DNA of 64,000 bases from Macrostomum hystrix. Taxonomy: Eukaryota > Animalia > Platyhelminthes. Every line of letters starts with the position of its first letter. Within the stretch, counting starts at the first letter, position 1. The notes beneath the pieces were generated by a model. The model did no database searches. It saw nothing but the letters and a program-made list of their open reading frames with translations, and had not been told where the DNA came from. Shown piece after piece: positions 42,225-58,200 of the stretch. The stretch lies in assembly GCA_950097015.1 (NCBI GenBank), contig CATNEN010000001.1, positions 5,022,001 to 5,086,000 on the forward strand. The letters are read 5' to 3'. The position numbers and the translations under genes were made by a program.

Positions 42225-45200
42225 ATGACCAATTCAAGCAATCACGGCCAAACCAGTAGTCGCGACACGCCGGAGAGTTTGGCGACCAACAATGAACACT
42301 TGGCCAAGCGGTGCAATGTAGTCCAGGTGACTAATATATCACCTCAGGCTACTAAGGATCAAATCAAATCCCTAATGGGCTATCTTGGCCACATTAGCGA
42401 CCTAGTGATTTATCCCAGCGTTATCCCAACCGACCCGCCGCCGCCTAGTCTTGTTGCTTACATTCGCTACGACGAAAAAGAGAACGCCCTGCTTAGTCTG
42501 CATCTGAACAATACAGTGCTGTTAGACAGGGCCCTGATTGTACTACCGGTGCTGTCTAATAAGATACCGGACGAATTATACGCTACCAGAATTATGTGTC
42601 CTGAGCACACTTCCGCGGGAGTTTTTCCTAAAACTGCCGACTGGCCATTGGATGTCATCAGTATGGTTGTTGGCAAAATGGGAGAACAACAGATTGTTAC
42701 GGTGGATCCCAATCTGCCGCCTGAGCACGCTTATCCTCCGCTGCCGCCCACTACTGATCCTAATCGGATTGAAGAGATTAGGCGAACTGTTCTAGTTACT
42801 GGCTTGGAGGCTAATACTACGCCTCAGCAGGTGAGCTGTCAATCTCTGTCTTATCTTATCGCTCATATTTTCTGCTGTCATATAACTGTATGACCCAGCA
42901 CGTTAGTTTCAAATGAGCAATATTATTAAAGGACCAATTCCTTCGAATGACCCATTTTGTAATATGACACATTCTTTCATGACCTTTTCTGTCATACTAT
43001 GACTTGTGCCGTCATATGAACCTAACCTAATGGCCTACATTAGCCCATTCTGTCATATGTGCAATGATTTAAATATACTAATTCTTTCATATTTTGAACC
43101 ATTCTGTCACAATAAACATTATTCTATTACGTATCCTGTCGTAAGACCCATTAGTTGATATGACCAATCATGTTGTACTAATCTACTGTTCTACTAATAT
43201 AACCCATTTTAATGACAAATTCAGTCATTAACCCTATTCTATTTCTTCTGAATGACATATTTTTCATTTTAAATATTCTTTCATGACCCATCCTGTTGTC
43301 CCAATTCTGTCATAGTGTGACCATTTCTATTGAATGACTCGATTCTGTCATAGTGTGACCATTTCTATTGAATGACTCAATTCTGTCATAGTGTGACCAT
43401 TTCTATTGAATGACCCAATTCTGTCATAGTATGACCATTTCTATTGAATGACTCAATTCTGTCACAGTGTGACCATTTCTATTGAATGACTCGATTCTGT
43501 CATAGTGTGACCATTTCTATTGAATGACTCAATTCTGTCATAGTGTGACCATTTCTATTGAATGACCCAATTCTGTCATAGTATGACCATTTCTATTGAA
43601 TGACTCAATTCTGTCATAGTGTGACCATTTCTATTGAATGACCCAATTCTGTCATAGTATGACCAATTCTATTGAATGACCCAATTCTGTCATAGTATGA
43701 CCATTTCTATTGAATGACTCAATTCTGTCATAGTGTGACCATTTCTATTGAATGACTCAATTCTGTCATAGTGTGACCATTTCTATTGAATGACCCAATT
43801 CTGTCATAGTATGACCAATTCTATTGAATGACTCAATTCTGTCATAGTATGACCAGTTCTATTGAATGACTCAATTCTGTCATAGTATGACCAGTTCTAT
43901 TGAATGACTCAATTCTGTCATATTGAACTTGTCATGAATTTCTTTGTTGACCTGTCCTGATCTAAATGACAGATAATCCTAAAATTACATCCTAATTTAT
44001 CTCTCCATATCTCCCTCCAATGCTTACACAGGTAATAGCCTACTTTGAGCCCGATCTAGAAGTGAAATTTGCTCGCATGGCAACAGGCGAAGGCGGACGA
44101 ACAGGCTGTTTCGTAGAGTTCTCCTGCCAGACTAGCATCGCCAAAGCCCTGGCAATGTCTGGCGGCATTATTAACAACGGACCGGCTATTGTCCAGCACG
44201 CCACCTGCGCTATAATTAAACCGGCTACAATGTACGGCTTAGATCCGAAGACAAGCTTCTTTACTGAGTCTGCGCCGACTAACAGGCCGACTGGAAGGTC
44301 GTCTTCTCGACGTAGTCGGTCTAGGTTAGTCTTTTATAATTAAACAAAATCTGAGCTTTATCTTATTTATTGTGTCTAACCAGTTCTTAATCTACCCTGT
44401 TCTCAATCTACCCTGTTCTCAATCTCAATTTACCCAGTTCATAATCTACCCTGTTCTCAATCTACCCAGTTCTCAATCTACCCTGTTCTCAATCTCAATC
44501 TACCCAGTTCATAATCTACCCTGTTCTCAATCTACCCAGTTCTCAATCTACCCAGTTCTCAATCTACCCAGTTCTCAATCTACCCAGTTCTCAATCTACC
44601 CAGTTCTCAATCTACCCTGTTCTCAATCTCAATCTACCCAGTTCATAATCTACTCAGTTCTCAATCTACCCAGTTCTCAATCTACCCAGTTCTCAATCTA
44701 CCAAGTTCTCAATCTACCCAGTTCTCAATCTACCCAGTTCTCAATCTACCCAGTTCATAATCTACCCAGTTCTCAATCTACACAGTTCATAATCTACCCA
44801 GTTCTCAATCTACCCAGTTCTCAAATCTACCCAGTTCTTGATCTACCCAGTTCTCAATCTACCCAGTTCTCAATCTACCCAGTTCTCAATCTCAATCTAC
44901 ACAGTTGATCATAATCTACCCAGTTCTCAATCTACCCAGTTCATAATCTACCCAGTTCTCAATCTACCCAGTTCTCAATCTACCCAGTTCTCAAATCTAC
45001 CCAGTTCTTGATCTACCCAGTTCTCAATCTACCCAGTTCTCAATCTACCCAGTTCTCAATCTACCCTTTGTTTGAATCTACTCGCACATTTTTTGTGACA
45101 CTAGACCCGCTGCCAGCTAGGACGCAATTCTGCCAATTTCGCTGATTCCTGAGCACACACGCACACATACCACACACAGGTACACGCTCACGCAGGTGTG

Positions 45201-46429
45201 TTCATTTGCCCTGACTTTCTCATTATCAGGCAGTGTACACTCTCTCTGTGACTTAGAGGTTGGCGCTCAAGGGCGCAAATTGCACGACAAGCCCCCAAGC
45301 CTTCTCTCCGTGGCTGCGCCCAATTTAATGTGGACTCGCCTCGGAATCCAGCTCAGGGACCTTGGTGCGAGAGGCAAACGCGATAACCGCTCTGCCACTG
45401 ACCCCCCAAAGTGATCTCATAAGATCAGTTTCTCAATAAGTCAGTACAAATATTATTCAGATATTTCCCGCAAAATCTCGCAGATCCTCTCGTCGATCGC
45501 GTCACTCCGAGCGTCGTCGTACCAGATCCCGTTCGCGTCACAGTCACAGGCGTCGATCCTCGCGTTCTCGGTCTCGTTCGCGCGATCGTGATCGCAAGCG
45601 GAGTCGACGAAGAAGTAAGGATCGCGACAGGGATCGTGAAAGGGATCGTGATAGGGACCGCGACCGGGATCGGGATCGGGATCGGGACCGGGATCGGGAG
45701 TCCCGCAAGCGCAAACGAAGTCGCAGTCGAGATCGGCATCGCGATCGTGACCGAGAAAAGGATCGCGACAAGGAAAAGGACAAGGACAAGGACAAGGATC
45801 GGGATAAAGACCAGGATAAAGATAAGGAAAAGGATCGAGCCAGCGCTAGCCGCGAGGGTAGGCGTCGTTCGCGCAGCCGAAGTCACAGCCGCAGCGGCAA
45901 GCGTCGGCATCGTCACCGGAGTCGCGACAGAGACAAGGATCGGGATCGGGATCGCGACAGGGACCGCAAGCGAGGGCGAGGCGGAGACGACGCACTTAAA
46001 GCGGACGATGATAACAATGCCTCCGAGTCTAACGCCGGCGTTGACGTTGACACTGACGCCACCGGCGAGAAGTCGAAGAACGATGATCGCAGCGATAGCG
46101 GCAACAACAAAGACAAGGCCGATAGTGGCAGCCGGAACAGCAGCCGCAGTCGCAGCCGCAGTCGCAGCGGAAGTCGCAGCCGCAGCGAGAGCTGCAGTCG
46201 AGGAGCAACGATGCCCGAAGCTCCAGCCGAGGAGCAGACTGAATCGTCTGCCGCCGATGCCGCAGCTTCGTCAGCCGGTCAGGCTGATGTTGATCGTCAA
46301 GAAGAAGACAAAAATGAAGGTTCTACAGCCGCTATTGTTAGTGGCGAAGATAAGATGGAATCGCAGCCAGATCCGGAAGCATCTATGGATGCGTCTAACG
46401 ATGCTACTGACGAAAATTCTCAGCAGTAG
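42225..46429 (+). CDS. SR-related splicing regulator, SREK1/SRSF11 family (2 RRMs + RS/RD-rich tail). Exons 42225..42830, 44032..44324, 45484..46429
   Basis: RRM1 VVQVTNISPQATKDQI..HLNNTVLLDRALIVLP; linker YPPLP..DPNRIEEIRRTV; RRM2 ending HATCAIIKP. Exon 3 is an open RS/RD dipeptide frame contiguous with the 46211..46429 ORF. Confidence 0.88.
43300..43925. repeat. Minisatellite, 38-bp unit AATTCTGTCATAGTGTGACCATTTCTATTGAATGACTC
   Basis: Direct inspection. Confidence 0.95.
44375..45070. repeat. Minisatellite, 16-bp unit AATCTACCCAGTTCTC (same family as 38.1-39.5 kb)
   Basis: Direct inspection. Confidence 0.95.
45105..45405 (-). mobile_element. SINE-like repeat, copy 6 (intron 2 of the SR gene)
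   Basis: Reverse complement of head (gtggcagagcggttatcgcgtttgcctctcgcacc) and core. Confidence 0.7.
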
Positions 46430-46504
46430 TATGACCATGGGACTTCATATTTGACTTATGTTTTTTGTTTATAGAAAATTTATTTATGGGGTTTTGTTAG
46501 TTTA

Positions 46505-47520
46505 CGAGCTAGAATCGCTGCAGGAGTCGTAGCTAGAATCGCAGCAGGAATCTTAGCAAGAATCGCAGCAGGAATCTCAGCTAGAATTGCAACAGAAGTC
46601 GTAGCTAGAATTGCAGCAGGAATCGTAGCAAGAATCGCAGCAGGAATCGTAGCAAGAATCGCAGCAGGAGTCGTAGCTAGAATCGCAGCAGAAGTCGTAG
46701 CTAGAATCGCAGCAGGAATCTTAGCAAGAATCGCAGCAGGAATCTCAGCTAGAATTGCAACAGAAGTCGTAGCTAGAATTGCAGCAGGAATCGTAGCAAG
46801 AATCGCAGCAGGAATCGTAGCAAGAATCGCAGCAGGAGTCGTAGCTAGAATTGCAGCAGGAATCGTAGCAAGAATCGCAGCAGGAGTCGTAGCAAGAATC
46901 GCAGCAGGAGTCGTAGCAAGAATCGCAGCAGGAATCGTAGCAAGAATCGCAGCAGGAGTCGTAGCTAGAATCGCAGCAGGAGGCGTAGCTAGAATCGCAG
47001 CAGGAGTCGTAGCTAGAATCGCAGCAGGAGTCATAGCTAGAATCGCAGCAGGAGGCGTAGCTAGAATCGCAGCAGGAGTCGTAGCTAGAATCGCAGCAGG
47101 AGTCGAAGCTAGAATCGCAGCAGGAGTCGTAGCTAGAATCGCAGCAGGAGTCGCAGCTAGAATCGCAGCAGGAGTCGTAGCTAGAATCGCAGCAGAAGTC
47201 ATAGCTAGAATCGCAGCAGGAGGCGTAGCTAGAATCGCAGCAGGAGTCGTAGCTAGAATCGCAGCAGGAGTCGAAGCTAGAATCGCAGCAGGAGTCGTAG
47301 CTAGAATCGCAGCAGGAGTCGCAGCTAGAATCGCAGCAGAAGTCGCAGCTAGAATCGCAGCAGAAGTCGTAGCTAGAATCGCAGCAGGAATCTTATCAAG
47401 AATCGCAGCAGGAATCTTATCAAGAATCGCAGCAGGAATCTCAGCTAGAATTGCAGCAGAAGTCGTAGCTAGAATTGCAGCAGGAATCGTAGCAAGAATC
47501 GCAGCAGGAGTCTTAGCTAC
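46505..47520. repeat. Minisatellite, 24-bp unit GCTAGAATCGCAGCAGGAGTCGTA
   Basis: Direct inspection. Confidence 0.95.
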
Positions 47521-48146
47521 TTAATTTAATAAGTTTGTTATCTACTAGGTCATAGAAAGATTAGCGAAATCCGTTAACCTCATTTTTCCAAAAGCCGATT
47601 ATTAATGTTGAAGATGGAGCATTTTAGGCTGCAATGCTTATTATCGTTATTAATATATTGTTAATATAGTTTCAATTTAAAAGAAGGCAATCTTCAGCTG
47701 TTAGTTTTTGTGTTGTAAATTACCAACTTTAAATGTAATAATTGAACTTATTTACGTCGTTGTTGTAGCTAAATTATTACGTAACACAATATTTATTACT
47801 CGTTGTGTTTTCCAATTTTAAACTACTAGTTTTATTGTGTACAAGTAGTGTGGTTAGCTTGTAACCATCAGAAAACAATCTGCAGCTAAAAAGAAAACTA
47901 AAAATAAATTGTTTATGTAATAAGAAAATTTTGTTGTGCTTCTATTTGGTACTTTTTAAGTTCGTATGTAAAATGTAATTCATTTTTGCTTTTTCTTAAA
48001 TTGTGACACCGTTTAGATAGCTTAATAATTTAAAATGATTTAAAATAAATTTGGTTACCTTAATAATTCACGTTTAATAATCTTAATCGATTAAGTAAGG
48101 AGGTGGACTTCTTGTTTAATTATTAATTATTCAATTTCAATCTTTA

Positions 48147-49075
48147 GTTAATCTGTTCTCTACACCCTCCAATCCTCAGTTAATCTGTTCTCTACACCCT
48201 CCAATCCTCAGTTAATCTGTTCTCTACACCCTCCAATCCTCAGTTAATCTGTTCTCTACACCCTCCAATCCTCAGTTAATCTGTTCTCTACACCCTCCTA
48301 TCCTCAGTTAATCTGTTCTCTACACCCTCCAATCCTCAGTTAATCTGTTCTCTACACCCTCCAATCCTCAGTTAATCTGTACCCTACACCCTCCAATCCT
48401 CAGTTAATCTGTACCCTACACCCTCCAATCCTCAGTTAATCTGTACCCTACACCCTCCAATCCTCAGTTAATCTGTACCCTACACCCTCCAATCCTCAGT
48501 TAATCTGTACCCTACACCCTCCAATCCTCAGTTAATCTGTACCCTACACCCTCCAATCCTCAGTTAATCTGTACCCTACACTATCCAATCCTCAGTTAAT
48601 CTCTACTCTACACTATCCAATCCTCAGTTAATCTCTACTCTACACTATCCAATCCTCAGTTAATCTCTACTCTACACTATCCAATCCTCAGTTAATCTCT
48701 ACTCTACACTATCCAATCCTCAGTTAATCTCTACTCTACACTATCCAATCCTCAGTTAATCTCTACTCTACACTATCCAATCCTCAGTTAATCTCTACTC
48801 TACACTATCCAATCCTCAGTTAATCTCTACTCTACACTATCCAATCCTCAGTTAATCTGTACCCTACACCCTCCAATCCTCAGTTAATCTCTACTCTACA
48901 CTATCCAATCCTCAGTTAATCTCTACTCCACACCATCCAATCCTCAGTTAATCTCTACTCCACACTATCCAATCCTCAGTTAATCTCTACTCTACACTAT
49001 CCAATCCTCAGTTAATCTCTACTCTACACTATCCAATCCTCAGTTAATCTCTACTCTACAGCCTCCAATCTTTAG
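48147..49075. repeat. Minisatellite, 32-bp unit AGTTAATCTGTTCTCTACACCCTCCAATCCTC
   Basis: Direct inspection; three variant blocks. Confidence 0.95.
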
Positions 49076-49147
49076 ATTATCTCCACTCTTTAAGTAATCT
49101 TCCGATGATTTTATTTGAATCGAGTAGATAAATGTTAACGTAAAAAT

Positions 49148-49159
49148 TATTTTTTCCAG
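49148..49159 (+). promoter_or_regulatory. Putative trans-splice acceptor of PEX12 (tattttttccag)
   Basis: Strong acceptor immediately followed by the PEX12 frame in phase 0; in-frame TAA at 49136-49138. Confidence 0.75.
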
Positions 49160-50206
49160 GCTGATGACGTCACACCCTCGTCATCATCGGAGCAAATAAT
49201 TCGTCCAAGCATATTTGATCTATTAGCGGCTGACCAATTATCCAGTTTATTTCAGCCAGCTTTCGAGCACCTACTAACTGCTATTGCTAGTTGGATTGGA
49301 ATTGATGGAACCGAATTAAATTACGACAATGATAATGTCCAAGATCGAATACTTCAATTTCATCAACGACTCGCATTGTGGGTTCTTCAGCACAAACGCT
49401 TGATTTACACATTGCTGTCAGTTTGCATAGAGTTTTATTGTTTAAACCGGCGAGGTGGCACGGTGGCAGAAAATTTCTACTCTCTTCGAAGATTTTCCGT
49501 AGCAAACGGCGGCAATGGTTCGTCCTCATTGTTAGCGACTAGCCTTGTATTCAAATCTTTATTGACATCTGTCATAGGCCCTTTAGTAATTAGACAACTA
49601 TCAGATCTATACGACTCCTGGGTTGATAGAACTGTAACGCATTCGTCAGTTAGTTATCGAATAATATCTGCGTTAATTGCTGTTTATCCTCGAGCCAGAG
49701 CACTACTGTTGCTAGGCAACGCTGCTCTGCTATTCGGCTATTTGACTGAACGAACTGATCGGCACAAATTAGAGCACATCATCGCTGGTGTTAGATTGTC
49801 CTGTCGAGTTGACAACGACAATGACGACAATCGGGATCAAGACCAGGCGTTTGAACTTCGCGCATGGACTAGTAGAGCTGTCGGACATGGCGTCACCTTG
49901 GCAATGTTCTTCCTGCAATTTTATCAGTCTCGCATTAGCGCCGGAGATAATTCAGTAGAGAATGCCGCGCCGTCTCCCTATTTGGGATCGGCATCTGTAC
50001 CGCCGCCACCGAAGCATCCGGTCCAAAATTTAGATCCCAGACTGTGTCCGCTCTGTAGTCGGCCCAGACAGAATCCGTGCGCATTGGCTACGTCCGGTTG
50101 CGTGTTTTGTTTCGCCTGCATTCACAGTCATTTGGCTTCAGGATCTGCTAGATGTCCGGTCACTGGTTTACCGTCAAGTGTTAGACATATTGTTCGTCTA
50201 TTGTAA
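49160..50206 (+). CDS. PEX12: Peroxisome assembly protein 12; frame opens at the splice acceptor and has no local start ATG
   Basis: N-terminal ADDVTPSSSSEQIIRPSIFDLLAADQLSSLFQPAF (Pex12 RPSIF motif), GTVAENFYSLRR, MFFLQF, and degenerate RING CPLC..ATSGCVFCFACI..CPVTG. Confidence 0.92.
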   Translation, partial: ADDVTPSSSSEQIIRPSIFDLLAADQLSSLFQPAFEHLLTAIASWIGIDGTELNYDNDNVQDRILQFHQRLALWVLQHKRLIYTLLSVCIEFYCLNRRGGTVAENFYSLRRFSVANGGNGSSSLLATSLVFKSLLTSVIGPLVIRQLSDLYDSWVDRTVTHSSVSYRIISALIAVYPRARALLLLGNAALLFGYLTERTDRHKLEHIIAGVRLSCRVDNDNDDNRDQDQAFELRAWTSRAVGHGVTLAMFFLQFYQSRISAGDNSVENAAPSPYLGSASVPPPPKHPVQNLDPRLCPLCSRPRQNPCALATSGCVFCFACIHSHLASGSARCPVTGLPSSVRHIVRLL

Positions 50207-50305
50207 TCAGACTGTCTATTAATTTTCTATTCGTTTTGCTGGCTGGTTGTACTGTCCTAATAATACCAATAATGATTATTAATAGTACTTTGCAAACAGT
50301 AGACA

Positions 50306-50520
50306 AGCGCTAGAAGCAGACCCTTGTCGCTAGAAGCAAACCCTTAGCGCTAGAAGCAGACCCTTAGCGCTAGAAGCAGACCCTTAGCGCTAGAAGCAGA
50401 CCCTTAGCGCTAGAAGCAGACCCTTAGCGCTAGAAGCAAACCCTTAGCGCTAGAAGCAGACCCTTAGCGCTAGAAGCAAACCCTTAGCGCTAGAAGCAAA
50501 CCCTTAGCGCTAGAAGCAGT
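50306..50520. repeat. Minisatellite, 20-bp unit CCCTTAGCGCTAGAAGCAGA
   Basis: Direct inspection. Confidence 0.95.
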
Positions 50521-51099
50521 CGTGACACCACTTTGTACTACTTCAAAATACTGTTCACAGTATTTCAGTCGGTAGAAGTGGGTAAAGTAATTAAATAATT
50601 ATTATTTGCTTAACATATAAAAACCGCTCAGCTACTTCCTTGTCCATTATTTTCGATCGCGATTATGTCAGTGCCAAGATTGTAAGTTAAGTAATTTTTC
50701 GAACTTTTCTGCTCCTGTAGCTTTTTTAGGTTAAAAAATCGAGTTTACAAGTCGCTACTGTGTTTTCTCATAGTTGAGAAAAGTTTTGTATGCTTATTGA
50801 TTTACATTTTTTGTTAACTGATTAATCTTAGAAATGTGATTTGCTAAGTTATTTTTTTCTAATGTCTGCATTATACATATTTTGTATGTTGAACAACAAA
50901 AAATCGCCTAATTGTGCATTACATACATGTAATTCTGTTAGATATATAAATTGTGTTTTTTGTTCAAATTAGGATAGAATATTGATTTGTCACTTTAAAT
51001 TAAAGTGATTTTACTTTTTTAATTTTTTTTCTAAATGCAACGATAGAAACAGAAAAAAAGTATAAACACGGCGACATATTTCTCTTCCTTACACCGCAA

Positions 51100-51420
51100 C
51101 ATCACACTACTCAATTATCACACTACTCAAACATCACACTACTCAATTATCACACTACTCAATTATCACACTACTCAATTATCACACTACTCAAACATCA
51201 CACTACTCAATTATCACACTACTCAATTATCACACTACTCAATTATCACACTACTCAATTATCACACTACTCAATTATCACACTACCCAAACATCACACT
51301 ACTCAATTATCACACTACCCAAACATCACACTACCCAAACATCACACTACCCAAACATCACACTACCCAAACATCACACTACCCAAACATCACACTACCC
51401 AAACATCACACTACCCAAAC
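51100..51420. repeat. Minisatellite, 16-bp unit ATCACACTACTCAATT / ATCACACTACCCAAAC
   Basis: Direct inspection. Confidence 0.95.
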
Positions 51421-51523
51421 AATAGAACCCTGAAACATAACAATGCCGAAACATCACTACACCGAAAATTCGCAATACCAAAGCGTCAAATTACATCGAT
51501 AATCTCTCCTTCCAGCTAACGCC

Positions 51524-51979
51524 ATGGCCACTCCATCGTCTAACGATCCGCAGCAGCAGCAGCAGCAGCACGATCGCTTTCAACAATTGCAAGACGAGCT
51601 AGGCGCACTCATTGAAAACTGTTGGGAGGCCGGTATAATGGTCTGCAATTATCAGCCTCATGTTAATCTTCAACACAAAATGAACTTTCTAGTTAGCCGT
51701 TTAGCCGCTCTAGATCGAGCCAAAGCTCAAGTTGCCGATGTTCAAGTGCCTCTAGCCGTACTAAAGTACATTGACGAAGGCCGCAATCCTCAATTGTACA
51801 CTAGGCACTGCTTAGAGACCGCTTTGCAACGAAACGAAGAAGTTAAAGGCAAATTAGAGAACGTTAATCGATTTCGAACCCTACTATTGGCTGAATTGTC
51901 TCAGGCATTCGAGCAGGATATGAGTCGATATCGAAGTCTTCGGGCTGATCCAACACCGCCGTCTATTGGCGACGAATGA
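51524..51979 (+). CDS. MED10: Mediator subunit 10 (Nut2), single exon
   Basis: VQVPLAVLKYIDEGRNPQLYTRHCLETALQRNEEVKGK is the Med10 signature. Confidence 0.95.
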   Translation: MATPSSNDPQQQQQQHDRFQQLQDELGALIENCWEAGIMVCNYQPHVNLQHKMNFLVSRLAALDRAKAQVADVQVPLAVLKYIDEGRNPQLYTRHCLETALQRNEEVKGKLENVNRFRTLLLAELSQAFEQDMSRYRSLRADPTPPSIGDE

Positions 51980-52399
51980 TGGACTGATGGATTATCGTTG
52001 TTGTTGTTGTGTTGTAACTTACCTCTTTGTGTAACTTGCTAGACATGATGTCTAACCGTAATATTTTTCGTTCAAACTATGAATTACAAGCCAGAGCAAT
52101 AAAGAACCTAATGTATATACCGGTTTCTAGGAAATTCCAAATGGGATTTCCCTGAAAAACTCACCTGCTAGGGCAATCCTACATCCTTTATTGTTCTTTA
52201 ACATGAAATTGCTCCTCATCAGTATCTAAAAGGTGGGATTTTTCCCATATAAAAATCGACACCTAATCAGTGTCTATCAACAGAGATTTCCCCATTGTTA
52301 ATCGACTCATAATCAGTACCTAACAGGTGAGATTTCCCTATTAAAAATCGACTCTCTACCTGTGCCTACCTGTGCCTAACATCTGGGATTTCCCTAAAA

Positions 52400-54932
52400 A
52401 ATCGACTCCTAATACGTAACTAGCGTCTGTGATTTCCCTAACAAGAATAGACTCCTAATCAGTGTCTATTGTCTGGGATTTCCCTAACAAGAATAGACTC
52501 CTAATCAGTGTCTATCGTCTGGGATTTCCCTAACAAGAATAGACTCCTAATCAGTGTCTATCGTCTGGGATTTCCCTAACAAGAATAGACTCCTAATCAG
52601 TGTCTATTGTCTGGGATTTCCTTAACAAGAATAGACTCCTAATCAGTGTCCATTGTCTGGGATTTCCCTAACAAGAATAGACTCCTAATAAGTGTCTATT
52701 GTCTGGGATTTCCATAACAAGAATAGACTCCTAATCAGTGTCTATTGTCTGGGATTTCCCTAACAAGAATAGACTCCTAATATATATATATATATAGACG
52801 CAAAAAGTTAGATAGCTTTTGCGCGCACGCGCTCGCAGAACAGACTCCTAATCAGTGTCTATTGTCTGGGATTTCCCTAACAAGAATAGACTCCTAATCA
52901 GTGTCTATTGTCTGGGATTTCCTTAACAAGAATAGACTCCTAATCAGTGTCTATTGTCTAGGATTTCCCTAACAAGAATAGACTCCTAATCAGTGTCTAT
53001 CTTTTAGGATTTTCCTAACACGAATAGACTCCTAATCAGCGTCTAACGTCTGGGATTTCCCTAAGAAAAATAGACTCCGAATCAGTGTCTATTGTTTGGG
53101 ATTTCCCTAACAAGAATAGACTCCTAATCAGTGTCTATTGTCTGGGATTTCCCTAACAAAAATAGACTCCGAATCAGTGTCTATAGTCTGGGATTTCCCT
53201 AACAAGAATAGACTCCTAATCAGTGTCCATTGTCTGGGATTTCCCTAACAAGAATAGACTCCTAATCAGTGTCTATTGTCTGGGATTTCCCTAACAAGAA
53301 TAGACTCCTTATCAGTGTCTATTGTCTGGGATTTCCCTAACAAGAATAGACTCCTTATCAGTGTCTATTGTCTGGGATTTTCCTAACACGAATAGACTCC
53401 TAATCAGCGTCTAACGTCTGGGATTTCCCTAACAAAAATAGACTCCGAATCAGTGTCTATTGTCTGGGATTTCCCTAACAAGAATAGACTCCTAATCAGT
53501 GTCTATTGTCTGGGATTTCCCTAACAAAAATAGACTCCGAATCAGTGTCTATAGTCTGGGATTTCCCTAACAAGAATAGACTCCTAATCAGTGTCCATTG
53601 TCTGGGATTTCCCTAACAAGAATAGACTCCTAATCAGTGTCTATAGTCTGGGATTTCCCTAACAAGAATAGACTCCTAATCAGTGTCTATTGTCTGGGAT
53701 TTCCTTAACAAGAATAGACTCCTAATCAGTGTCCATTGTCTGGGATTTCCCTAACAAGAATAGAATCCTAATCAGTGTCTATTGTCTGGGATTTCCCTAA
53801 CAAGAATAGACTCCTTATCAGTGTCTATTGTCTGGGATTTTCCTAACACGAATAGACTCCTAATCAGCGTCTAACGTCTGGGATTTCCCTAACAAAAATA
53901 GACTCCGAATCAGTGTCTATTGTCTGGGATTTCCCTAACAAGAATAGACTCCTAATCAGTGTCTATTGTCTGGGATTTCCCTAACAAGAATAGACTCCTA
54001 ATCAGTGTCTATTGTCTGGGATTTCCCTAACAAGAATAGAATCCTAATCAGTGTCCATTGTCTGGGATTTCCCTAACAAGAATAGACTCCAAATCAGTGT
54101 CTAACGTCTGGGATTTCCCTAACAAGAATATACTCCTAATCAGTGTCTATTGTCTGGGATTTCTCTAACAATAATAGAATCCTAATCAGTGTCTAACGTC
54201 TGGGATTTCCCTAACAAGAATATACTCCTAATCAGTGTCCATTGTCTGGGATTTCCCTAACAAGAATATACTCCTAATCAGTGTCCATTGTCTGGGATTT
54301 CACTAACAAGTATAGACTCCTAATCAGTGTCTATTGTCTGGGATTTCCCTAACTAGAATAGACTCCTAATCAGCGTCTAACGTCTGGGATTTCCCTAACA
54401 AGAATAGACTCCTAATCAGTGTCTAACGTCTGGGATTTCCCTAACAAGAATATACTCCTAATCAGTGTCTATCGTCTGGGATTTCTCTAACAATAATAGA
54501 ATCCTAATCAGCGTCTAACGTCTGGGATTTTCCTAACAAGAATAGACTCCTAATCAGTGTCTAACGTCTGGGATTTCCCTAACAAGAATATACTCCTAAT
54601 CAGTGTCCATTGTCTGGGATTTCCCTAACAAGGATAGACTCATAATCAGTGTCTATTGTCTGGGATTTCCATAACAAGGATAGACTCATAATCAGTGTCT
54701 ATTGTCTGGGATTTCCCTAACAAGGATAGACTCATAATCAGTGTCTATTGTCTGGGATTTCCCTAACAAGGATAGACTCCTAATCAGTGTCCATTGTCTG
54801 GGATTTCCCTAACAAGGATAGACTCATAATCAGTGTCTATTGTCTGGGATTTCCCTAACAAGGATAGACTCATAATCAGTGTCTATTGTCTGGGATTTCC
54901 CTAACAAGAATAGAATCCTAATCAGTGTCTAT
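52400..54932. repeat. Minisatellite, 46-bp unit AACAAGAATAGACTCCTAATCAGTGTCTATTGTCTGGGATTTCCCT
   Basis: Direct inspection. Confidence 0.97.
52782..52841 (-). mobile_element. ~60-bp insertion with (TA)n tail and 11-bp target-site duplication
   Basis: Interrupts a 46-bp array; AGACTCCTAAT occurs at both 52771-52781 and 52842-52852. Confidence 0.65.
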
Positions 54933-55206
54933 AAGTGTTGAATTTACCTAATAAAAATTTATACTAATCAATGTTTGATTTCCTTGTACTTTAGTTTTAA
55001 TTCTCGCTACTAAAGTACGTAAATAAACTTGTTGTACTGTAATAACGGACGTCGTTAATATAATTTTTAAATAAAATATATTGTCACGACTGTAAAAATA
55101 GAAATTGATGACCAATTCTTACAACTCGTGCTTAAAAATAATTTTTATATTAGATTTTTATTTTAAAAGTGTTATAGTTTATCAATATAAATCTAATTTA
55201 TTGAAT

Positions 55207-55220
55207 CGTAACTGTTTCAG
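55207..55220 (+). promoter_or_regulatory. Putative trans-splice acceptor of NUB1 (cgtaactgtttcag)
   Basis: TTTCAG preceded by a branch-like TAAC; the NUB1 frame starts in phase 0; in-frame TAA at 55209-55211. Confidence 0.75.
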
Positions 55221-58200
55221 GATGAACACGAGTTGCTTGTCAAACTGCGTCAAGCATTACGCAGTAGATCTATTAAACTGTGGGAGCCGCCATATACTTT
55301 TAAAACCAATGACGGTCTGGGCGAAGCGGACTCTACTGGGATGAGTTCATTAACGACTAGTTTGTCCAATGAATTGCGCCTATGTCCAGCGGCCTGCGCT
55401 AAGGCTTTGGAAAATTTGCGTAGGCAAGCTTTGGATAATGCCGAATCACTGGCTCATTATCGAGCTACACAGGAGGCTACTATGAAAGTGCGTCTACCTC
55501 GGGGTCACGAGCCTCAGGTGCTTAGAATCCGGTGCAGCCTACAGTCAACAGGTTATCAATTCAAATCGTTGATTGTAGCTCAGGCTGGTCAACAACTGTC
55601 TATGGCCGGCGTTACCCTAATCTGCAATGGTCGAGTGTTGGACGACGCATTGTCGCTTGGTTAGTCTTGTCTAAAATTCGAACTCTCGACCTTTTTGTTG
55701 TGTAGTTCAAAGCAAACTACAATTTTCATTAAGGTTTGAAGTTAGAATCCAAAGTACTACTAATGAGCAGTAAAATTATGCCTAAATTTGTTAAGGGGTT
55801 AGCGTGTTGGCCTCTCGAACCATTGTAACTGAGCTCGATTCCGCGGCGAGGCCACATTCATATAGGGGCGCTGCCACGGCGAGAAGGCTTAGGGTTGTCG
55901 TAAAATTTGAGGTCCAACCTCCAAGGCACAGTGAGAGTGTACACTGCCTGACAATGAGAAAGTCTGTGTACGGTATCTGTGTGCGTGTGTGCTCAGGAGT
56001 CAGTGAAATGGGCAGAATTGCCTCCTCGCTGTCTGCAAGTCTATTGTCACCAAATGATGTGCCATTGCCCGCAGCCCTCCTGCAATGATTATATATTATT
56101 ACTATGCCTCTAATGGTGGTGTTATAGTAAAATATTTACTATATATCCCAATCCCTATGTTAGGCAACCAAGGCTTTCAGAATGCTAGCAGCGTTATGGT
56201 TTTAATACGCGCCGCTCCGGACGATGTTGAAAATCTGCGCACCTCCGCCGACGACGCCGACGCTCTACGCGAAGCCGAATCCGAAGCCGTACTATTGGCC
56301 GGCGAAGATGACCCAGAATCCGGACCGGGCGGCGGCATTGGCGTCGGGACCGGCATGCTAGATGTGACTAATCAGAGAGGAGAACGATTGCAGCTGCCCA
56401 AGGAGCATAGGAAGGCTCTGTACTATGCGATGATTCTCGGAGAGAAGGTTTGTTATGTGCAATGGTGTCAAAAGTTAATTTCTAGATTGAGAGTTTCTAG
56501 ATTGAGAGTTTCTAGATTGATAGTGGAAAGGTAGAGTTGATTGGGAGATGTGAAGTAAATAGTGAGAGGTATAGTAGATTCGGATAGGAAGAGTAGATAG
56601 GGAGAGGTAGAGTAGATAGGGAGAGGTAGAGTAGATAGAGAGGTAGAGTAGATAGGGAGAGGTAGAGTAGATCGGGAGAGGTAGAGTAGATAGGGAGAGG
56701 TAGAGTAGATAGGGAGAGGTAGAGTAGATCGGGAGAGGTAGAGTAGATAGGGAGAGGTAGAGTAGATAGGGAGAGGTAGAGTAGATAGTCAGAGGTAGAG
56801 TAGATCGGGAAGGTGCAGGGGTAGAGTGGAAGGTGCAGGGGTAGAGTAGAAGGTGCAGGGGTAGAGTAGAAGGTGTAGTGGTAGAGTAGAAGGTGCAGGG
56901 GTAGAGTGGAAGGTGCAGGGGTAGAGTGGAAGGTGCAGGGGTAGAGTGGAAGGTGCAGGGGTAGAGTAGAAGGTGCAGGGGTAGAGTAGAAGGTGTAGTG
57001 GTAGAGTAGAAGGTGCAGGGGTAGAGTGGAAGGTGCAGGGGTAGAGTGGAAGGTGCAGGGGTAGAGTGGAAGGTGCAGGGGTAGAGTGGAAGGTGCAGGG
57101 GTAGAGTGGAAGGTGCAGGGGTAGAGTGGAAGGTGCAGGGGTAGAGTGGAAGGTGCAGGGGTAGAGTGGAAGGTGTCTTACTTGACTTGGCTTGCAGACT
57201 GGCCCAACTCGTGTCCCAATTAACTTCAGGGCAAGGCCGCCCTTCGCTCCGGTGAGCACGGTCGCGCACTACTCCTGCTGCTATCAGCCGACGAAGCATT
57301 TCAACGCGTTGATCGCAGTCTATTAGACAAGGTCGATAATCACGCTCTACTGCAGCTAGACACCGTCTGGTGCTATCTGTGCCTGAGTCGGCTTGACGAA
57401 CTAGCCGACGCTTGGGATCGACTCGGCAAGGCCGAGCGGGCCCTGGCTAAGGCCTACGGAGAGCGACTGGAACGAGTTGAAGCTGTTAAAGGTGAGATTG
57501 CGTTGATCATTATTTAAAATACTCTTCTCTACATAAGATCTACTTCTCTCCGCTAAAAAAACCGCTCCCTCCCTTTAAAATCCGCTCCGTCCATTTAAAA
57601 TCCGCTTCCTCCATTTAGAATCCGCTCCATTCATTCAGATTCCACTCCCTCCATTCAGGATCCGCTCCCTACATTCAGTATCCGCTCCTTCCATTTAGAA
57701 TCCGCTCCATTCATTCAGATTCCACTCCCTCCATTCAGGATCCGCTCCCTACATTCAGTATCCGCTCCTTCCATTTAAAATCCGCTCCCTACATCTAGAC
57801 TCTATTATCTACATCTAGACTCTATTATCTTCATCTAGAATCCGCTCCCTTTATCAAGAATCCGCTCCCTTCATCTAGAATCCGCTCCCTTCATCTAGAA
57901 CCAGCTCCCTTCATCTAGAATCCGCTCCCTTCATCTAGAATCCGCTCCCTTCATCTAGAACCAGCTCCCTTCATCTAGAACTGGCTCCCTTCATCTAGAA
58001 CCAGCTCCCTTCATCTAGAATCCGCTCCCTTCATCTAGAACCCGCTCCCTTCATCTAGAACCAGCTCCCTTCATCTAGAACCAGCTCCCTTCATCTAGAA
58101 TCCGCTCCCTTCATCTAGAATCCGCTCCCTTCATCTAGAACCAGCTCCCTTCATCTAGAATACGCTCCCTTCATCTAGAATCCGCTCCCTTCATCTAGAA

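Follow-up and report, generated by a model that had tools for sequence, protein, structure and literature searches.

The peroxin-12 gene (PEX12) of the flatworm Macrostomum hystrix lacks a start codon of its own, and the AUG at the end of the spliced leader (SL) very probably supplies it, in frame, to give a 349-aa product beginning MADDVT.... The gene lies on the forward strand of a 64,000-nucleotide stretch of the genome, called here the window, to which all unlabelled positions refer. SL trans-splicing at the acceptor at 49159/49160 is seen directly in assembled transcripts, whereas the use of the leader's AUG for initiation is argued from the reading frame, from the conservation of the protein and from what is known of other flatworms.

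Upstream of the exon, the genomic PEX12 frame is closed by a TAA at 49136-49138 (+ strand), eight codons away, and the seven codons from this stop to the acceptor include neither an ATG nor a near-cognate codon. The acceptor consists of a polypyrimidine tract and AG (tattttttccAG, 49148-49159, + strand), at which contigs of runs X4, X5 and X6 change from SL to window sequence; its last bases, TTCCAG, end at 49159 and fit [T/C]TNCAG, the motif of trans-splice acceptors in Macrostomum lignano (PMC8629364). From 49160 onward the sequence reads GCT GAT GAC GTC ACA (ADDVT...), and no stop interrupts it for 348 codons, until the TAA at 50204-50206. The frame, Pfam, the alignment of relatives and contigs covering its whole length together define a single coding exon at 49160-50206 (+ strand), and transcript coverage defines a 3' UTR at 50207-50300 (+ strand), with one contig extending 21 letters past 50300. 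An ATG at 49164 lies in the +1 frame and encodes MTSHPRHHRSK, 11 codons followed by a stop (49164-49199, + strand). The sole in-frame ATG of the exon is codon 249, at 49904-49906 (+ strand, in TLAMFFLQF), and ATA or ATT, which are near-cognate codons, stand at codons 13, 14 and 18 (49196, 49199 and 49211). An earlier sequence-only reading of this DNA had described the AG at 49158-49159 followed by an ADDVT frame open to 50206, the in-frame TAA at 49136, the out-of-frame ATG at 49164 with its stop after 11 codons, and a first in-frame ATG some 250 codons into the exon; all four held when the window was read again.

The identity of the product as peroxin-12 is well supported. In Pfam, the window protein, searched as encoded by the genomic exon, matches Pex2_Pex12 (PF04757) over residues 25-257 with an E-value of 2.7e-19 and a score of 70.2 bits (cut-off 25.1), and every named homologue among its matches is a peroxin-12 or peroxisome biogenesis protein 12, not Pex2 or Pex10. 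PEX12 is the RING subunit of the peroxisomal Pex2/Pex10/Pex12 ubiquitin ligase. Its conserved N-terminal motif, RPSIFDLLAADQL, corresponds to RPSxFELLAxxQL in Pex12 from fungi, nematodes and plants. The C-terminal part, aligned with Pex12 proteins that carry that name, shows a RING-type cysteine pattern with invariant C296, C299, C317, C320 and C332. Pfam found no RING family on the window protein itself at E 0.01; the M. lignano orthologue P0001, which is the closest protein (57% identity), carries PF00097. The protein thus shares with known Pex12 proteins the Pex2_Pex12 N-terminal domain, the RPSxFELLA motif and the C-terminal cysteine pattern. Its identity to Pex12 from outside the flatworms is only about 25-30%, and it differs from orthologues outside Macrostomum, which have a methionine of their own.

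Transcript evidence comes from public runs, of which four, from one 2020 study, share about 90% of the window's words. Contigs from X4, X5 and X6 (one study) and from X1 were compared with window positions 49075-50300. The first three runs each gave one contig of 1.1-1.2 kb, matching the window from 49159 to 50268, 50291 or past 50300 with 0-1 mismatches, and each of these contigs opens with 22 extra letters, GCGAAGACTCAATTTATTGCAT, that belong to the SL. The acceptor AG and the ATG of the leader have the G at 49159 in common. None of the listed runs is recorded as RNA, and the RNA nature of X4, X5 and X6 is deduced from the SL junction and from the missing upstream sequence, contig depth in all three being nil at 49075-49156. 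A retrocopy was considered as the source of the contigs and rejected: a genome search found a single PEX12 locus and no SL-PEX12 junction in genomic DNA, which indicates that the contigs derive from spliced RNA. The junction between a leader-derived ATG and the exon, predicted by the sequence-only reading, is present in X4, X5 and X6 as ...TTGCATG/GCTGATGAC. At the RNA level it is ...UUGCAUG/GCUGAUGACG, and the mature PEX12 mRNA reads ...GCAUG/GCUGAUGAC, which translates as MADDVT... over 349 aa.

The same reading had named an upstream cis-spliced exon in cDNAs as the observation that would speak against it; in the contigs the SL sits directly on 49160, at least for the dominant form. It is very improbable that the ATG comes, in the main isoform or in an alternative one, from a short cis exon beyond the tandem repeats, the SL form being only one of several. 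The AG at 49158-49159 could serve cis-splicing as well, and cis- and trans-splicing do use common acceptors in parasitic flatworms (PMC12582326); moreover, the runs exist as contigs, from which rare isoforms are dropped and which allow no quantification, so that rare variants would be lost. Against this, the SL is present on every one of the three contigs extending to the 5' end, neither a joint nor any further loose end is reported at 49159, the sequence closest upstream consists of 0.9 kb of a 32-bp repeat, and the M. lignano gene model has been left "partial" and not lengthened to an upstream ATG. A minor cis-spliced or unspliced PEX12 form may nevertheless accompany the trans-spliced one.

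An error of assembly as the reason for the missing ATG, or a PEX12 that is a decaying pseudogene, is scarcely credible. Nothing specific speaks for either apart from a one-base deletion at 49422 in the X1 contig, and independent transcript contigs agree with the window to within 0-1 differences over 1.1 kb, the boundary between acceptor and exon included; in addition, the 348-codon frame is intact, the Pex12 and RING residues are conserved, and the genome has no other PEX12. As for the X1 contig, which bears a different organism label, it also has a T>G change at 49350, and its deletion is likely a difference between strains or an assembly tip rather than a frameshift because it falls within a run of T, with the contig ending 29 bases away.

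The proposal that the leader donates the methionine depends on an SL that ends in AUG, and the absence of such an end had been listed beforehand as evidence against it. The M. lignano SL is 35 nt long and ends in ...TTATTGCATG, with a GTAAG donor next to it (PMC8629364). The last 20 bases of this leader plus GT were searched for by exact match in the M. hystrix genome (220,453,370 bases in 42 contigs), and at least 20 copies of the complete string, ...AAGACTCAATTTATTGCATG/GT, were found. The genome has at least 20 SL RNA genes with the exact exon end ...TTATTGCATG/GTAAG, and since these copies end in ATG before the GT donor, the SL of this species does end in AUG. The M. hystrix leader is identical to the 35-nt SL of M. 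lignano (PMC8629364), and the M. hystrix genome paper considers the final ATG of the SL to be a likely start codon (PMC10468722). Most copies belong to tandem arrays on contigs C15, C17 and C42 that repeat about every 11.6 kb. In two of them, ...ACGGTCTCTTACTGCGAAGACTCAATTTATTGCATG/GTAAGACACCG... leads into an Sm-like AUAUUUUUAG and then a terminal hairpin, and folding of the 105-nt SL RNA gives three hairpins (-33.8 kcal/mol, z = -4.2). No SL family of flatworms exists in Rfam, and a scan of two SL loci matched only a neighboring U1 gene, a full-length U1 snRNA gene (RF00003, 151.7 bits) about 300 bp upstream of an SL RNA gene of the same orientation, both in the region L002:1434-2002 (G000 C15). 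Elsewhere in this genome (G000), GC or other bases take the place of GT after SL-like 3' ends, among others at C7:8556419, C7:8561407, C8:629356, C24:365104 and C38:27887531. These are probably not SL RNA genes but DNA copies of trans-spliced RNAs, either retrocopies or LTR relics.

Taken together, these observations lead to the following scheme. The single-exon PEX12 pre-mRNA is trans-spliced to the SL after the TTCCAG acceptor (last base 49159), which places the leader's terminal AUG directly before GCU (49160), in frame, as the only usable start codon. The 40S subunits would then load on the capped SL and initiate at its terminal AUG, and the product would be peroxin-12 of 349 aa, starting MADDVT.... 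From this AUG (ATG/GCT GAT GAC...) no stop occurs for 348 codons. The sequence-only reading had combined the SL AUG and GCT into the same 349-aa MADDVT... protein with G at +4; the junction is seen in the contigs, and from it we infer initiation at the SL AUG itself, for which the expected N-terminal peptide is (Ac-)ADDVTPSSSSEQIIR.

It is very improbable that the transcript is trans-spliced with the SL AUG in frame merely by chance (1 in 3), while translation starts at one of the near-cognate codons (13, 14 or 18) or at Met249. Such a start might be favored by the weak context of the SL AUG, with T (U) at -3 although +4 is G, and by the length of the leader ahead of it, only about 32 nt, and the near-cognate codons are indeed present at 49196, 49199 and 49211. 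However, initiation at Met249 loses nearly all of the Pex2_Pex12 domain (residues 25-257), and for a ribosome passing over the SL AUG the first AUG, five bases later, is the out-of-frame one at 49164. The frame opened by the SL AUG yields an N-terminus of normal length, and initiation at the SL AUG has been demonstrated experimentally in flatworms (Cheng et al., 2006, as reported in PMC12582326 and PMC9851317). No workable alternative start exists. With initiation at the SL AUG as the only usable start, production of the PEX12 protein depends on trans-splicing.

The length of the N-terminus can be judged against relatives. Aligned with Pex12 of M. lignano, fungi, nematodes and plants, the genomic ORF enters the conserved block RPSxFELLAAxQL at residue 15. 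With the SL methionine counted, 16 residues precede PSIFDL, and the corresponding length in the 127 relatives that start with a methionine and carry the motif has a median of 14 (range 4-52). The comparison with orthologues, which had been put forward as a check, thus agrees with the earlier expectation: judged by alignment, only the methionine is missing and no conserved N-terminal part is lost. The M. lignano orthologue P0001 has been deposited as "partial", starts with AASTAVRPSVF without a methionine and has the same ...RHIVRLL end; the label and the missing methionine suggest the same ATG-less arrangement in that species. A search of protein representatives returned no further Macrostomum relatives of PEX12 besides P0001 and P0002.

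P0002 (M. lignano, UniRef A0A1I8JR10) is a fusion of an RS-rich RRM protein, PEX12 and MED10, and was compared with window positions 42225-51979. In M. hystrix, an RRM/RS-domain gene precedes PEX12 on the same strand, with its stop, read from the frame, at 46427-46429, and MED10 (Pfam Med10, 4.9e-32) follows at 51524-51979. Since P0002 fuses the three neighbors, gene order is conserved between M. hystrix and M. lignano. A tblastn search of the window with the RS-rich N-terminal part of P0002 gave no match at 1e-3 because this part is of low complexity. The chimera fits read-through or operon transcription combined with an annotation that failed for want of a PEX12 start.

Tandem repeats account for about 1,946 bp of the 2,730-bp spacer from the upstream gene to the PEX12 acceptor, and the remainder is about 780 bp. 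Most of the sequence upstream of PEX12, whether outron or intergenic, is a 32-bp tandem repeat of about 29 copies (48138-49070, Tandem Repeats Finder). On the other side, MED10 lies about 1.2 kb past the PEX12 3' UTR, and about 540 bp of this spacer are repeats. Long regular tandem repeats (84-97% matches) fill nearly every spacer of the gene cluster, at 44375-45066, 46507-47519, 48138-49070, 50306-50519, 51098-51421 and 52382-54000, with periods of 16, 24, 32, 20, 32 and 46 bp.

In M. lignano, operons were defined by repeat-adjusted spacers of less than 1 kb (PMC8629364; Ustyantsev and Berezikov, 2021), and by comparison both PEX12-flanking spacers in M. hystrix are below 1 kb after the same adjustment, with an acceptor that fits [T/C]TNCAG. 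The order RS-domain RRM gene, PEX12, MED10 could therefore represent an SL-resolved operon, a candidate recognized by gene order, spacers and PEX12 trans-splicing. MED10 has an ATG of its own at 51524, eight bases after a ccttccAG acceptor (AG at 51514-51515). An SL added there would place its AUG out of the MED10 frame at the head of a short overlapping ORF, and would thus compete with the MED10 ATG. Further along the window, a NUB1-like ORF (55200-55345) starts directly after tgtttcAG (55219-55220) with GAT GAA CAC....

How old the ATG-less state might be can be considered only tentatively. With somewhat less than an even chance, it is ancestral to Macrostomum; M. hystrix and M. lignano, whose proteins are only 57% identical, would then share it, and the gene would belong to a conserved, repeat-bloated operon in which an RS-domain splicing factor is followed by PEX12 and MED10. 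If this were true, peroxisome biogenesis in Macrostomum would long have been dependent on SL trans-splicing. The main value of the case is practical and lies in annotation, the known mechanism remaining unchanged. Gene finders that require an ATG truncate such genes, wrongly label them "partial" or fuse them with their neighbors, and both the "partial" label and the fusion occur in the M. lignano PEX12 models; annotation of Macrostomum genomes consequently needs start-codon calling that is aware of the SL. In addition, one essential organelle-biogenesis gene joins the set of genes whose translation is tied to trans-splicing.

Within flatworms, PEX12 of M. hystrix is a clear but ordinary case and not a surprising one, the mechanism having been known since 2006. 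It was then that the 3'-terminal AUG of a flatworm SL was described as an initiator methionine (Cheng, Cohen, Ndegwa and Davis, 2006, J Biol Chem 281:733, as cited in PMC12582326 and PMC9851317), and more than 40 Schistosoma mansoni cDNAs are stated to require the SL AUG (Cheng et al., 2006, according to PMC9851317, where the term "slORFs" is used). The M. lignano study of trans-splicing does not discuss SL-donated start codons (PMC8629364). All the sequence-level features that define an mRNA with an SL-donated AUG are found in PEX12. As in the S. mansoni mRNAs, an SL exon ending in AUG stands in frame with an ORF that has no start, and the added methionine restores a conserved N-terminus; unlike them, the present example comes from a free-living species and concerns PEX12, and here initiation at the leader's AUG is read from the junction.
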